Part shown: positions 37,453-43,022 of the stretch, in pieces
Layout of the letters: each line of letters begins with the position of its first letter
Position numbering within the stretch: the stretch's first letter is position 1
Sequence record: NC_025447.1
Length of the DNA stretch: 64,000 nucleotides
Strand: one strand, 5' to 3'
Translations under genes and position numbers: made by a program
The notes under the pieces: generated by a model
Told to the model about the DNA's origin: nothing
Databases searched by the model: none
What the model saw: the letters and a program-made list of their open reading frames with translations, nothing else

Positions 37453-38292
37453 ATGACAAATAGACCAAAGCGTAAAAAGTATCTCAATAATGCTGATTTA
37501 CTTCGTGAAATACAAAAAAGTAAGATTTCATACTGCTGGTTATTAGACAAATCATATAGTATGTATGATTATATTGTTTTTCATGAGTCAGAAATTACTG
37601 CTGAGTTACTTGAAAAAGCCAAAGCAGCACGAATCAAACGACTAAACAATGAAATGCTTGATAGTATTCGTGAAAAGGAAAGTATGAGTGCTAAAAAAGC
37701 TAAAGAATATGCAGATGAAAATAATTTAGTTATCACTGATGTTCCAATCGATGAAGTTGTTATTCGTGTTATCACTGATGAACATATTCCACCCGACACT
37801 AGAGTTAACTTTGAACCATTCAAGCATTACATTGTAGATAATGAAGGAATTCTCTATGAAGTATGTCGTTCTCATTGGAAAGGAGATCTTGAAACTGGTG
37901 AATTCAGTACTGTTCATGGTAAAATTACAAATGAACTAGGGAAGATGTTCATTAAACTTGCTGAGGAAATCTCTCATAAATCTAATTACAGAAACTATAC
38001 ATACTTAGATGAAATGATGGGTGATGCAAGAATACAATTAGTTAAAAACGCACTTCTCTTTAAAGAGAGCATTCTTTATAAAAAAGATAAACCAGCAGTT
38101 CAGCTAAATCCTTTCTCTTACTATACATCATTCGTAAACAATAGTTTTCGTTCTATATTGAATAGTGAGAAAAATGTTCGAAATATACGTGATGATTTAC
38201 TTGAAATGCATGGCTTTACGCCATCACATACACGTCAAATTGAAATTGAATTGAACATGATTGAAAGGAAAAATGAAGATGGCTCTGTTTGA
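37453..38292 (+). CDS. gp55: T4 gp55-like late sigma factor with a large internal insertion
   Basis: YLNNADLLREI, LGKMFIKLAEEISHKSNYRNYTYLDEM and NPFSYYTSFVNNSF; precedes gp47/46 as in T4. Confidence 0.8.
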   Translation: MTNRPKRKKYLNNADLLREIQKSKISYCWLLDKSYSMYDYIVFHESEITAELLEKAKAARIKRLNNEMLDSIREKESMSAKKAKEYADENNLVITDVPIDEVVIRVITDEHIPPDTRVNFEPFKHYIVDNEGILYEVCRSHWKGDLETGEFSTVHGKITNELGKMFIKLAEEISHKSNYRNYTYLDEMMGDARIQLVKNALLFKESILYKKDKPAVQLNPFSYYTSFVNNSFRSILNSEKNVRNIRDDLLEMHGFTPSHTRQIEIELNMIERKNEDGSV

Positions 38293-41976: not shown

Positions 41977-42069
41977 AATTCCTCACCAAACTATTTGTTA
42001 TCAAAATATTTATAGATTAGTTATTTGCAATATTTTAAGTACTTAATGAATATTTTTATAAAAATAGTG

Positions 42070-42096
42070 AGACAACTTTAAAGTTTGTGCTATAAT
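42070..42096 (+). promoter_or_regulatory. RGACAA-N15-TATAAT promoter firing into an ORF-free region
   Basis: AGACAA 42070-75, TG-C-TATAAT with the hexamer at 42091-96, A-rich upstream. Confidence 0.65.
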
Positions 42097-42102
42097 GTTT
42101 GT

Positions 42103-42586
42103 TGTAGTAATGACAATCCTGTTGAATGCAGAAATGCATATAAATTAGAACCTGATCCTATCGAAAATGTAGATGGCAGATGAGCAGTTCAACAGTGCGA
42201 TGAGCAAAAGAAACCCGTTAGATGTGGGCATAGTTTGAACCCCTCACGGCAATGCGGCTCAATAAAGAACTCCGATAAGCATACAGAGAGTTCCTCGATA
42301 GACATATAAGGATCGCACCTTACCAGATTTGCTAAGGGAGTTTATTAAGTGATTTTAATAAACAGCCTGAAGTTTGATTGTATAGACTTTCAGGTGAGTG
42401 TCAGGATGATTAAGACTGACGACCGTTGCACATGACTGCGATAGAGAGAAACAGAGCAACCCGCTTTCGTTCTTAATATATTTTTAAGAAATTCGCAATA
42501 CAATAAATGCTGAAACCATCAGCGTCAAGAAATAGAGACTTCATTGTCTCTTTTTTATTGTCTTCATTCCCCTGCGGGGGGATGAA
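42103..42586 (+). ncRNA. Candidate large structured non-coding RNA of unknown family
   Basis: No ORF >=60 aa, higher GC than flanks, about a dozen visible helices including long-range ones, GAAA tetraloop, terminator-like hairpin with T tract (see findings). Confidence 0.6.
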
Positions 42587-42812
42587 AATGTCCTCAACAA
42601 ATCCCGTCAAGTATTAAATCTTTTAAAGTTCTTTATAATTAATTTAATTAAATGAATATGAGTTACGTAGTAACGAATATTCTTCAGCTAACGAATGAAA
42701 TGAGTTAGATGAATCCAATAATATTAAAATTAATCCTTTCATAATTCAATTCAAATAATTCTGTAGTTTAAAACCAAAAAAAACCAGCAACAATGTGCTG
42801 GCTATATGAAAA

Positions 42813-43022
42813 TTAGTGCTTCTCGTTTTGTTTTTTAATTTTTTTATTAAAAGACTTAACTAATAAGTCTCTATCTATTAATGGCATATTAAGGAGTGTT
42901 CCATAGTCAATGTTATCCATATATACAGAACATTCCATTAGTGCATTTTTGATTTCTGACTTATTCAGTTCTATCTCCTTCAGTACTTCTTGTATTTCTT
43001 CAGGAGATGACTGGAGAAGCAT
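42813..43022 (-). CDS. gp51-like baseplate hub assembly protein
   Basis: Small ORF coupled to gp26; YMDNIDYGTLLNMPLIDR resembles gp51-family pattern. Confidence 0.5.
   Translation of the reverse strand: MLLQSSPEEIQEVLKEIELNKSEIKNALMECSVYMDNIDYGTLLNMPLIDRDLLVKSFNKKIKKQNEKH

Follow-up and report, generated by a model that had tools for sequence, protein, structure and literature searches.

Two described replication origins come closest to the locus analyzed here. In plasmid ColE1, the displaced strand carries primosome-assembly sites, in the form of hairpins, past a folded RNA II of about 550 nt. In phage T4, ori(uvsY) and ori(34) are R-loop-fired origins, and plasmids with a T4 origin are replicated and packaged by the phage; the middle promoter is joined directly to an unwinding element of some 50 bp, in which neither sequence nor RNA structure is conserved. 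For Rak2-like jumbo phages, no defined origin is known to us, and two reviews of jumbo phages mention none.

The locus lies in a 64,000-nt stretch of sequence record NC_025447.1 (the window, in whose numbering all positions are given) from Escherichia phage 121Q, a Rak2-like jumbo phage. Its likeness to ColE1 consists in a constitutive promoter about 500 nt upstream, a long folded RNA (42103-42559) transcribed towards the candidate origin, a run of G residues near the 3′ region of this RNA and hairpins immediately past it, on what would be the displaced strand. Unlike ColE1, the module often has a terminator between the RNA and the hairpin tract, occurs in 4-5 copies per genome and belongs to a phage whose replisome is T4-like rather than of the Pol I/PriA type. 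No conserved promoter for a counterpart of the antisense RNA I was found; the sole good minus-strand site (42404-42377) sits in a hairpin that is variable in the alignment of RNA copies.

The comparison with T4 is suggested by the phage itself, which is T4-related and encodes endonuclease VII, gp46/47 and a gp55-like sigma factor beside the locus. Furthermore, as with the T4 origins, there are several copies per genome, the promoter represents a phage class that also stands ahead of DNA-synthesis genes, and replication and packaging of origin-bearing plasmids would suit the copies of the module found in bacterial islands. The layout is nonetheless different. An earlier note on this DNA had likened it to the T4 arrangement of a promoter abutting an unwinding element, a parallel that does not hold: the promoter lies about 510 bp upstream, a terminator intervenes in about half to two thirds of the copies, and it is the hairpins and a large structured RNA that are conserved, not AT-richness. 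A MotA-box-like TGCTT is absent from the promoter at 42068-42096.

A conserved module built around a structured RNA

The AT-rich palindromes singled out in the earlier note are the conserved, two-hairpin 3′ tail of a previously undescribed structured RNA gene of about 500 nt. The module begins with a promoter, a structured RNA of about 460 nt and a terminator, after which come the C4/G6 hairpin, the CAAAYCYCGTCA box and, last, the two hairpins. There are four copies in 121Q and five in its relatives, all on a single strand and spaced more evenly than expected by chance (P 0.003-0.005); in phage BF, for example, they lie at 30, 93, 175, 259 and 335 kb. A pattern scan of IMG/VR returned five copies of the box in each Rak2-like genome, and the upstream RNA was found in at least 72 phage genomes from nine host genera, as well as in bacterial islands. 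No account of the repeats, of the RNA or of an origin was found in the literature on 121Q, PBECO4, RaK2, GAP32 and CBB. In phage UE-S1, the repeat is annotated automatically, as a "repeat_region" only.

Three lines of evidence establish that promoter, folded RNA, G-rich hairpin and palindromic tract form the single unit that the note had supposed. First, in five genomes, 11 of 12 matches to the tract motif ATTCTTWGACA adjoin these RNA genes. Second, a covariance model of the tract recovers all four 121Q copies (46-106 bits) and has no match on the plus strand of the window besides the module copy. Third, the unit has moved wholesale into bacterial islands (see below). In addition, five of the seven perfect C-GNA-G hairpins of the 348-kb 121Q genome fall inside the four tracts. 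The tract forms the downstream half, itself conserved, of a cis-acting module that is complete in itself.

The promoter of the RNA gene (42068-42096, plus strand) comprises a −35-like TGAGACA (42068-42074), a 13-nt gap and an extended −10 element, TGCTATAAT (42088-42096). It scored 10 of 12 in a promoter scan, with TG, and TGnTATAAT occupies the equivalent place in 28 of 29 copies; transcription would start around 42103. The plus strand of 121Q carries about 24 promoters of this class. In phage CBB, a TGAAACG/−10 promoter class was described mostly ahead of DNA-synthesis genes (PMC5259590).

The RNA core itself (42103-42559, plus strand) was delimited in an alignment of 54 copies. RNAalifold predicts 68 pairs, 47 of them with compensatory changes; 95.7% of the cells are paired, and the covariation score is 0.589, as opposed to 0.217 +/- 0.006 in shuffles and at most 0.112 with slid partners. 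The core contains no conserved ORF. Rfam gave no match at gathering thresholds, whether for the window, for the Citrobacter island or for a set of 13 paralogues and orthologues plus two PA5oct loci; in permissive mode, terminator-like fragments were the best matches. A tRNA or tmRNA identity was likewise rejected, no such element being found. Whatever its function, the RNA of about 500 nt is a new large structured RNA family, without Rfam match. In its length (470-570 nt from start site to box among homologues), its many covarying helices and its several paralogues per genome, it recalls GOLLD, ROOL and sibling small RNAs of phages. It differs from GOLLD and ROOL in having no Rfam match, in its even spacing, in its obligatory downstream hairpin tract and in occurring also in islands.

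A search for long-range pairing between the box and either the 5′ leader or the core produced low-information candidates only (YYCU-GGGG and CGUC-ACGG, with wobble-only changes). The ncRNAs of phage PA5oct are abundant in RNA-seq (PMC7318152), and one of them, ncRNA004, has a strikingly similar 3′ architecture, its annotated 3′ end lying about 20 nt past its C/G hairpin. It could not be accepted as an RNA-seq-backed homologue, as the nhmmer match was not significant and the covariance model gave 18.7 bits (E ~0.015); it remains a lead only.

Terminator, box and the two hairpins

The terminator scan identified an intrinsic terminator-like hairpin at 42534-42557 on the plus strand, with a stem (42534-42551) made of AGAGAC and GTCTCT around the loop TTCATT, followed by T6. 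A hairpin with a T run occupies this place in 30 of 65 copies by strict scoring and in about 41 of 65 if weaker stems are included (46-63%). Next comes the C4/G6 hairpin (TTCATTCCCC-TGCG-GGGGGGATGAA, 42563-42586, plus strand), which has ten pairs including one T:G and contains an invariant GGGGGATG. With 24% of its pairs being G:U, this hairpin is specific to the plus strand. The note had placed it correctly and had taken it for the 3′ end of the RNA. The hairpin is indeed there; its role as the end of the primary transcript is not required, since the terminator precedes it.

The conserved box (CCTCAACAAATCCCGTCA, 42592-42609, plus strand) contains columns that are invariant in two alignments, and its CAAAYCYCGTCA core is nearly invariant across all module copies. 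It is followed by an AT-rich spacer (42610-42653) that holds a lone TATAAT (42634-42639) and the AT run TTTATAATTAATTTAATTAAAT (42632-42653). Sequence conservation of the spacer is confined to Asteriusvirus; other genera have GTATAAAT/GTATAAT..GTTAAACGT at the equivalent stretch. Three readings of this region as transcription signals or their remnants were rejected. The T4-type late promoter sequence TATAAATA (at −10) occurs 8 times on the plus strand of 121Q, where 53 are expected, and in none of its tracts, which counts against a late promoter within Asteriusvirus. The TAAAGTAC found after the box is over-represented, yet mostly within coding sequence. Finally, a derivation of the tract from the RNA's own promoter and leader, by duplication and decay, was dismissed, the mean z of local alignments relative to shuffles being −0.1. 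Avoidance of TATAAATA extends across the 121Q genome.

As the note had remarked, the tract is very AT-rich: at 23.6% GC, positions 42590-42780 rank among the lowest 0.8% of 191-nt windows of the genome, and their AT-richest 60 nt (15% GC) among the lowest 0.17%. The window copy is, however, an extreme case. Tract GC is 26.5% and 30.6% in paralogues and averages 30.3% over 63 copies, compared to about 34% for the genomes. Because AT-richness is not conserved, the reading of the tract as a conserved unwinding element fails; conservation bears instead on specific sequence and on the geometry of the hairpins.

The two nested inverted repeats reported by the note are both present, at 42654-42682 and 42683-42713 on the plus strand. 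Hairpin 1 has an outer stem GAATAT/ATATTC and an inner stem GTTAC/GTAAC, separated by a tandem GA/GA internal loop, and a GTA triloop closed by a C:G pair. The outer stem is the homologue of a GAATT..AATTC stem, for which the covarying forms GAATG..CATTC and GATTT..AAATC are found; in phage A4, both arms have gained a compensating insertion (GTTAAC-GTA-GTTAAC). Hairpin 2 consists of TTCAGCTAAC and GTTAGATGAA around an 11-nt loop, GAATGAAATGA, and is the homologue of GAC-NNNC-[GNA]-GNNN-GGC. Its single G.A mismatch is conserved as purine-purine (G87.A709) and has moved by one pair in phage ph0011. In the alignment of hairpin 2, 85% of the cells are paired and both sides have changed in 58 cells; covariation is 0.475, against 0.115 in shuffles (0/500) and at most 0.057 with slid partners. 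The predicted fold of 42645-42720 is made of exactly these two hairpins, adjacent to each other. Its energy as DNA is −10.1 kcal/mol (shuffles −3.2 +/- 1.5, z −4.6) and as RNA −15.9 (shuffles −7.9 +/- 2.2, z −3.7), with 0/200 shuffles as good in either case. The palindromes exceed chance expectation, since dozens of homologous copies preserve them through compensatory changes. Such changes are also found inside the syntenic class of copies, at the endonuclease VII/baseplate hub locus, which retains the tract without a downstream plus-strand gene. This pattern of substitutions argues that the hairpins are under selection.

The plus-strand fold is more stable than the minus-strand fold in 42 of 43 copies. 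C-GNA-G triloops, which are unusually stable as DNA mini-hairpins, account for 34 of 116 hairpin loops in the tracts, as opposed to 2 of 604 in the RNA cores, where the loops are of the GNRA or UNCG type. Similarly, G:U pairs make up 3% of the tract and 10-11% of the RNA core. The constraints on the tract are strand-specific and, by the loop and G:U statistics, DNA-like, which suggests that the hairpins may function as DNA. Neither hairpin is followed by the U run of an intrinsic terminator, the sequences found there being CUU and AUGAAUCC or GGCAAAU. Between hairpin 2 and the convergent terminator lies AT-rich filler (42714-42781) that is poorly conserved in the Asteriusvirus alignment. The terminator itself (42782-42803, minus strand) belongs to gene 595 (42813-43022, minus strand); it is weakly bidirectional in the terminator scan, and the annotations of phages G17 and UE-S1 also mark a terminator here.

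A candidate replication origin and its copies in bacterial islands

Our best guess, to which we assign a probability of roughly 35%, is that the module acts as a cis-acting, transcription-coupled replication origin. RNA polymerase would initiate at the upstream promoter and transcribe the folded RNA. This RNA, or its transcription, would open the DNA at the G6/box region, allowing the non-template (plus) strand to fold into both hairpins, with their C-GNA-G triloops, tandem G.A loop and purine-purine mismatch. The hairpins would in turn keep the region open or serve as a landing pad for phage replication proteins of the T4 type. Such a role fits the occurrence of four or five co-oriented, evenly spaced copies, the plus-strand-biased, DNA-like hairpins and the syntenic class that keeps the tract with no plus-strand gene downstream.

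Other observations count against it. AT-richness, and with it helical instability, is not conserved; the terminator present between RNA and tract in 46-63% of the copies should release most transcripts before the tract; and hairpin 2 is certainly part of an mRNA in one class of copies. Moreover, an RNA with 47 covarying pairs goes, to our knowledge, far beyond what any known phage primer requires. No T4 gp59-type loader domain was detected in 121Q, in a search that was likewise silent for control genomes. GC and AT skew in 121Q track gene orientation with no inflection at any copy, and are thus uninformative as an origin signal. Contigs from wastewater metatranscriptomes cover 42048-42608 and nothing in 42644-42911; as these are contigs of mixed relatives, they cannot show absence. 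In practical terms, the module is a concrete, clonable origin candidate for Rak2-like jumbo phages. It comes with built-in controls in its four paralogues, and the hairpin covariation predicts which mutations should be neutral.

The whole module, including both hairpins, is also present as one copy in each of two bacterial islands, in Citrobacter amalonaticus P55 and E. coli LR-29-1. These islands bear a serine or tyrosine recombinase, and the Citrobacter island further encodes a CI-like repressor and GmrSD. This island was the one compared with 121Q, and they have no protein in common. The module has been transferred whole to integrative islands of bacteria. As a rule, satellites take over cis-acting sites of their helper phages, and the present case resembles P4 and the PICIs in that a small island with integrase and repressor has only a non-coding element in common with a virulent, helper-like phage. 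It departs from them in what is carried, here a module with an RNA gene; the satellites that we know of have acquired cos/pac sites or late promoters and no RNA gene. If the module were an origin, the islands would carry it so that an infecting jumbo phage replicates them. Mobilization by Rak2-like phages is a proposal only, and separate ATCGATCGTT repeats, about 350 nt downstream of the module in the E. coli island, could be that island's own origin. We consider rather doubtful the combined scheme in which Rak2-like phages start replication at four or five evenly spaced origins, each made of an RNA gene and DNA hairpins, that enterobacterial islands have captured for amplification and perhaps packaging. 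If true, these islands would be the first satellites of jumbo phages. The island copies suggest an unrecognized interplay of jumbo phages with mobile defence islands or satellites.

Other possible roles of the tract

The main rival to the origin, and a possible one, is that the tract works as RNA. Its transcripts would start at a weak promoter past the box or reach it by read-through from that of the RNA, and hairpins 1 and 2 would be protein-binding, processing, antitermination (nut/boxA-like) or translation-control elements coupling the RNA gene to the genes downstream. The tract does lie 0-50 nt ahead of a plus-strand start codon in four of the five copy classes. In the 93-kb class, the start codon directly adjoins hairpin 2, and the ribosome-binding site (GGAG, a Shine-Dalgarno sequence) lies in the loop of this hairpin, which places it within the mRNA. 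Two classes have no terminator; therefore, the RNA must there be a long 5′ leader. The preference for the plus-strand fold agrees with this reading, as do the tandem G.A pairs and the conserved single purine-purine mismatch, which are typical features of RNA-protein recognition. As in lambda nut and rrn boxA-boxB, a U/C-rich UUCUUUGAC adjoins a small hairpin, near the start of a long transcription unit and past a terminator. The resemblance of UUCUUUGACA to rrn boxA, GCUCUUUAACA, is loose (about 8 of 12 positions), as is the match to the consensus GCUCUUUAACAA. Furthermore, the stem of the hairpin overlaps with the module motif, its loop is a GNA triloop rather than a GNRA-like pentaloop, and we know of no N-like protein for the 121Q module.

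Against a leader or trailer stands the syntenic class, which keeps both hairpins with compensatory changes although it has no plus-strand gene downstream. Loop usage and G:U content differ sharply from those of the adjoining bona fide RNA, and no other 5′ UTR of the five genomes searched contains the tract motif. Such a role also leaves unexplained the even spacing of the copies and the retention of the whole module in islands that have no genes in common with the phage. Should the tract nevertheless act in RNA, it would define a phage leader element of a new sort, coupled to a giant RNA.

We regard as unlikely that the module produces trans-acting, multi-copy sibling RNAs (decoys, sponges or counter-defence RNAs), the tract being a 3′ maturation or stability region or a second small transcription unit of about 150 nt, made up of hairpins 1 and 2 and starting near the TATAAT at 42634. 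A strongly structured core with its own strong promoter and terminator in each copy is what tRNA and small-RNA genes look like, and copies in defence islands (GmrSD) would suit a conflict of decoy and counter-decoy. The abundance of the PA5oct ncRNAs would point the same way, but their homology is unproven. Elements past a terminator are not normally co-conserved with sibling small RNAs, even spacing is not expected of these, and the 121Q tract has no conserved promoter consensus, with TATAAATA absent and a poor −35 region.

Less probable still is another kind of DNA site: a hairpin promoter like those of phage N4, a strand-specific nick site like those of T5 or a site for a genome-organizing phage DNA-binding protein. 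N4 early promoters have a geometry similar to that of a 5-7-bp stem with a C-GNA-G triloop, which 34 tract hairpins display (5-7-bp stem, 3-nt loop), and strand-specific triloops of this kind on short stems also recall d(GCGAAGC)-type mini-hairpins. Phage T5 has five nicks on one strand, reminiscent of the five sites on a single strand seen here, and even spacing would be in keeping with such sites. However, 121Q has no match to the T7/N4-type RNA polymerase family (PF00940) at E <= 0.001, in a search in which the control genomes gave none either; the sites show no link to nicks, and the obligatory upstream RNA would be unexplained.

The notion of a functionless, AT-rich convergent intergenic spacer with chance palindromes, which the position between plus- and minus-strand terminators and the end of BLAST alignments with distant relatives around 42618 might suggest, is refuted by the covariation of hairpin 2, the compensating double insertion in hairpin 1, the folding z-scores and the covariance-model matches in all paralogues and in the bacterial islands.

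Module copies and the structured RNA

The features described in the earlier note lie in a gene-free gap of 836 bp (41977-42812), bordered by the minus-strand endonuclease VII gene on one side and by a small hypothetical gene on the other, after which comes the baseplate hub gene (minus strand). Escherichia phage 121Q (KM507819, Asteriusvirus, 348.5 kb) matches the gap at 100% identity, and the window spans 284533-348532 of its genome; phages Munch, Hallingskeid, CBB and GAP32 have an equivalent gene arrangement. Sequence checks confirmed the C4/G6 hairpin (42563-86, plus strand), the AT run (42632-53) and two palindromes, here termed hairpin 1 (42654-82) and hairpin 2 (42683-713), both also recovered on the plus strand by folding. 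An intrinsic terminator missing from the earlier note (42534-51 plus T6, plus strand) is found 5' of the C4/G6 hairpin. The segment 42645-42720 folds precisely into the two neighbouring hairpins (z -4.6 as DNA, -3.7 as RNA), with none of 200 shuffles folding as well.

These elements belong to a repeated module. Phage 121Q carries four copies (90.3, 192.8, 247.5 and 326.6 kb), all on the plus strand, and full-genome searches found five in each of five other Rak2-like genomes. BLAST matched 72 "phages" records, most at 4-5 places and Klebsiella phages at 2, with hosts in Escherichia, Salmonella, Klebsiella, Erwinia, Yersinia, Serratia, Pectobacterium, Cronobacter and Xanthomonas. IMG/VR yielded about 15 further genomes in a pattern scan, the near-complete ones having about five copies each. 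Of 29 copies, 28 begin with an extended -10 promoter of the form TGnTATAAT, upstream of which lies a TGGGACA or TGAAAC box; the 121Q plus strand has about 24 such promoters, a class that the authors of the CBB study placed chiefly before DNA-synthesis genes (PMC5259590). In some copy classes a terminator-like hairpin and U run separate promoter and RNA core, as at 121Q genome 192770-192800 (L003:1436-1466; GGTGACAACATAATATGTTAGTCACC followed by T7) and in the 30-kb and 93-kb classes of other phages; attenuation and 5' protection are possible roles.

The RNA core occupies 42103-42559 in the window, with paralogues at 90331-90727, 192836-193316 and 247461-248049 of the 121Q genome, all on the plus strand. 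Between start site and box (470-570 nt), an alignment of 54 copies gave 68 consensus pairs, 47 of them with compensatory changes. In the core, 95.7% of cells are paired and covariation reaches 0.589; column shuffles gave 0.217 +/- 0.006 and slid partners no more than 0.112. None of the RNA copies searched matched an Rfam family, and a literature search returned no published description of the core. The core is a real, new structured RNA family. AAGGGAG, GAUAGAC and GACCGUUG..AACCCGC are among its invariant single-stranded motifs. An optional hairpin of about 35 nt (AAUUUUGUACAAUAUAGAUCCGUCCAAAAUUUG) occupies two separate sites in different paralogues (alignment columns ~425-470 and ~610-645; for example, 1770-1815 and 1925-1965 of locus L002), both unoccupied in the window copy. 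Contigs of a wastewater metatranscriptome, several of which clearly derive from paralogues or related phages, cover the RNA region 42048-42608 more deeply than the flanking genes and leave 42644-42911 at zero coverage.

Architecture of the 3' flank

The flank, or tract (42590-42780 in the window), follows a common plan. The core is followed by a terminator in 30-41 of 65 copies and then, in every copy, by the C4/G6 hairpin with its invariant GGGGGATG, the nearly invariant box CAAAYCYCGTCA and a short A/T-rich stretch leading to hairpin 1. In the latter, a tandem GA/GA internal loop separates the GAATT..AATTC outer stem from an inner stem, on which C-GAA-G or C-GTA-G is a frequent cap. Hairpin 2 conforms to GAC-NNNC-[GNA]-GNNN-GGC and has an A.G or G.A mismatch that is conserved. 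The noted palindromes are the 121Q forms of these two elements. Among close relatives, phage A4 has a longer inner stem in hairpin 1, with an insertion on each arm, and in phage ph0011 the hairpin 2 mismatch is displaced by one pair. Covariation in hairpin 2 is strong: it exists in six stem versions, with both-side changes in 58 cells and a covariation of 0.475 (0.115 in shuffles, 0/500; at most 0.057 for slid partners). In five genomes, 11 of 12 matches to a motif 5' of hairpin 2 fell inside tracts; five of the seven perfect C-GNA-G hairpins of 121Q lie within its four tracts, and a covariance model of the tract recovered all four. The analysis establishes the tract as functional, module-specific and strand-biased. 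Chance palindromes are excluded.

Ignoring kinship among copies, the plus strand folds better than its complement in 42 of 43 tracts (-19.0 vs -15.2 kcal/mol), C-GNA-G triloops account for 34 of 116 tract hairpin loops against 2 of 604 core loops, and the share of G:U pairs rises from 3% in hairpins 1 and 2 to 10-11% in the core and 24% in the C4/G6 hairpin. Loops of the GNRA and UNCG types serve in the RNA cores. Hairpins of the d(C-GNA-G) type have exceptional stability. From loop usage and G:U content, RNA-like constraints run through the C4/G6 hairpin, and both tract hairpins look DNA-like. Hairpin 2 lies 0-50 nt upstream of a start codon in four of five copy classes, and in one class its loop contains a ribosome-binding GGAG, indicating that it is transcribed there. 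The class at the endonuclease VII/baseplate hub locus, window copy included, lacks a plus-strand gene downstream and nonetheless retains the two hairpins, in which compensatory changes occur.

The earlier note had taken the AT-rich tract for an unwinding element. GC content of the window tract is within the lowest 1% of the 121Q genome; over 63 copies the mean is 30.3%, with 26.5% and 30.6% in 121Q paralogues. Since the window copy is the AT extreme and AT-richness is not the conserved property, this reading is not supported.

Occurrence in bacterial islands and a possible relative in PA5oct

The box pattern, run against one genome per prokaryotic species, gave 77 matches, about the number estimated for chance. 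Scored with the tract model, one stood out at 57.8 bits; a second, weak match (L147) scored 23.5 bits (E 0.0086). The former, from Citrobacter amalonaticus P55, is a whole module with hairpins 1 and 2 (hairpin 2, GTGCTAAC-GCA-GTTAGTAC) and the only copy in that genome. It lies in a low-GC island of about 9.5 kb between pilin genes and nadC (L186:12846-19901 plus L187:1-2500; NZ_JBALIF010000001.1, ~505.8-515.4 kb), encoding a large serine recombinase, a CI-like repressor, a GmrSD type IV restriction enzyme and several unknown proteins. Comparison of the island's proteins with 121Q and the retrieved phage loci gave no homologue for any of them. A related module occurs in 2 of 5,426 complete E. 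coli genomes. In strain LR-29-1 a single complete module (67 bits) lies in a low-GC island adjoining ffs (L188:4990-15400), with recombinase genes, including a tyrosine-recombinase remnant, and genes for DUF4326, DUF488 and dual-OB proteins; a compensatory pair separates its hairpin 2 (GTGCTCAC-GGA-GTGAGTAC) from the Citrobacter version. Thus, the module, tract included, is a self-contained, horizontally moving unit. Both islands may have ties to jumbo phages, as satellites or as defence islands. About 350 nt 3' of the LR-29-1 module, three iteron-like ATCGATCGTT-type repeats within an AT-rich stretch (L188:10010-10065) could form that island's own origin.

A possible relative is ncRNA004 of the distant relative PA5oct, annotated by RNA-seq (PMC7318152). 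Its 3' end and downstream flank (L102:960-1145; MK797984, ~246.66-246.84 kb) present a series resembling the tract: C/G hairpin, box, AT-rich stretch, GTATATGAGTT..ACGAATATAC palindrome and CAG..CTG hairpin, the annotated 3' end falling about 20 nt past the C/G hairpin. The nhmmer comparison was not significant and the tract model gave 18.7 bits, making homology marginal.

Candidate functions

RNA and hairpins together make up a new module of no known family; if it works like anything known, it is a novel form of transcript-coupled origins. As to the tract's mode of action, we infer, tentatively and with a probability of roughly 0.35, that the module is a candidate transcription-coupled replication origin. 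The DNA-like plus-strand hairpins would sit on the strand that an R-loop displaces, and islands holding the module would gain helper-dependent replication; plasmids with T4 origins are replicated and packaged by T4. Such an origin would explain the obligatory coupling of tract to promoter and RNA, the DNA-like plus-strand hairpins, the tract's retention where no gene follows, module capture by islands and the even spacing of copies. Copies are co-oriented, with gaps of 63, 82, 84, 77 and 52 kb in phage BF; for random points, a minimum gap this large has P 0.003-0.005 for genomes with five copies and 0.05 for 121Q, which counts as essentially one observation because copy positions are orthologous across genera. 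GC skew tracks gene orientation, with no signal at module copies. The origin reading is weakened by the intervening terminators, by AT-richness not being conserved and by overlap with ribosome-binding sites. The interpretation in the earlier note is supported in part: the unit is real and a transcript-primed origin has gained plausibility, but the unwinding element fails.

It is possible, if doubtful, that the tract acts in the transcript as a leader or trailer; this accounts for nearness to start codons and plus-strand bias but leaves unexplained the even spacing, the loop and G:U statistics and the class without a downstream gene. That the RNA is a trans-acting sibling with the tract as its maturation tail seems unlikely, and another kind of DNA-level site is improbable.

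Sigma-factor genes lie upstream of two of the four 121Q copies (121Q genome 89267-90232 and window 37453-38292): gene 167 is immediately 5' of the 90-kb copy, and the gp55-like gene 591 precedes the window copy by 3.7 kb. The 121Q genome strongly avoids the T4 late-promoter octamer TATAAATA (8 plus-strand and 9 minus-strand occurrences vs about 53 expected per strand), the majority of plus-strand occurrences being immediately 5' of genes.
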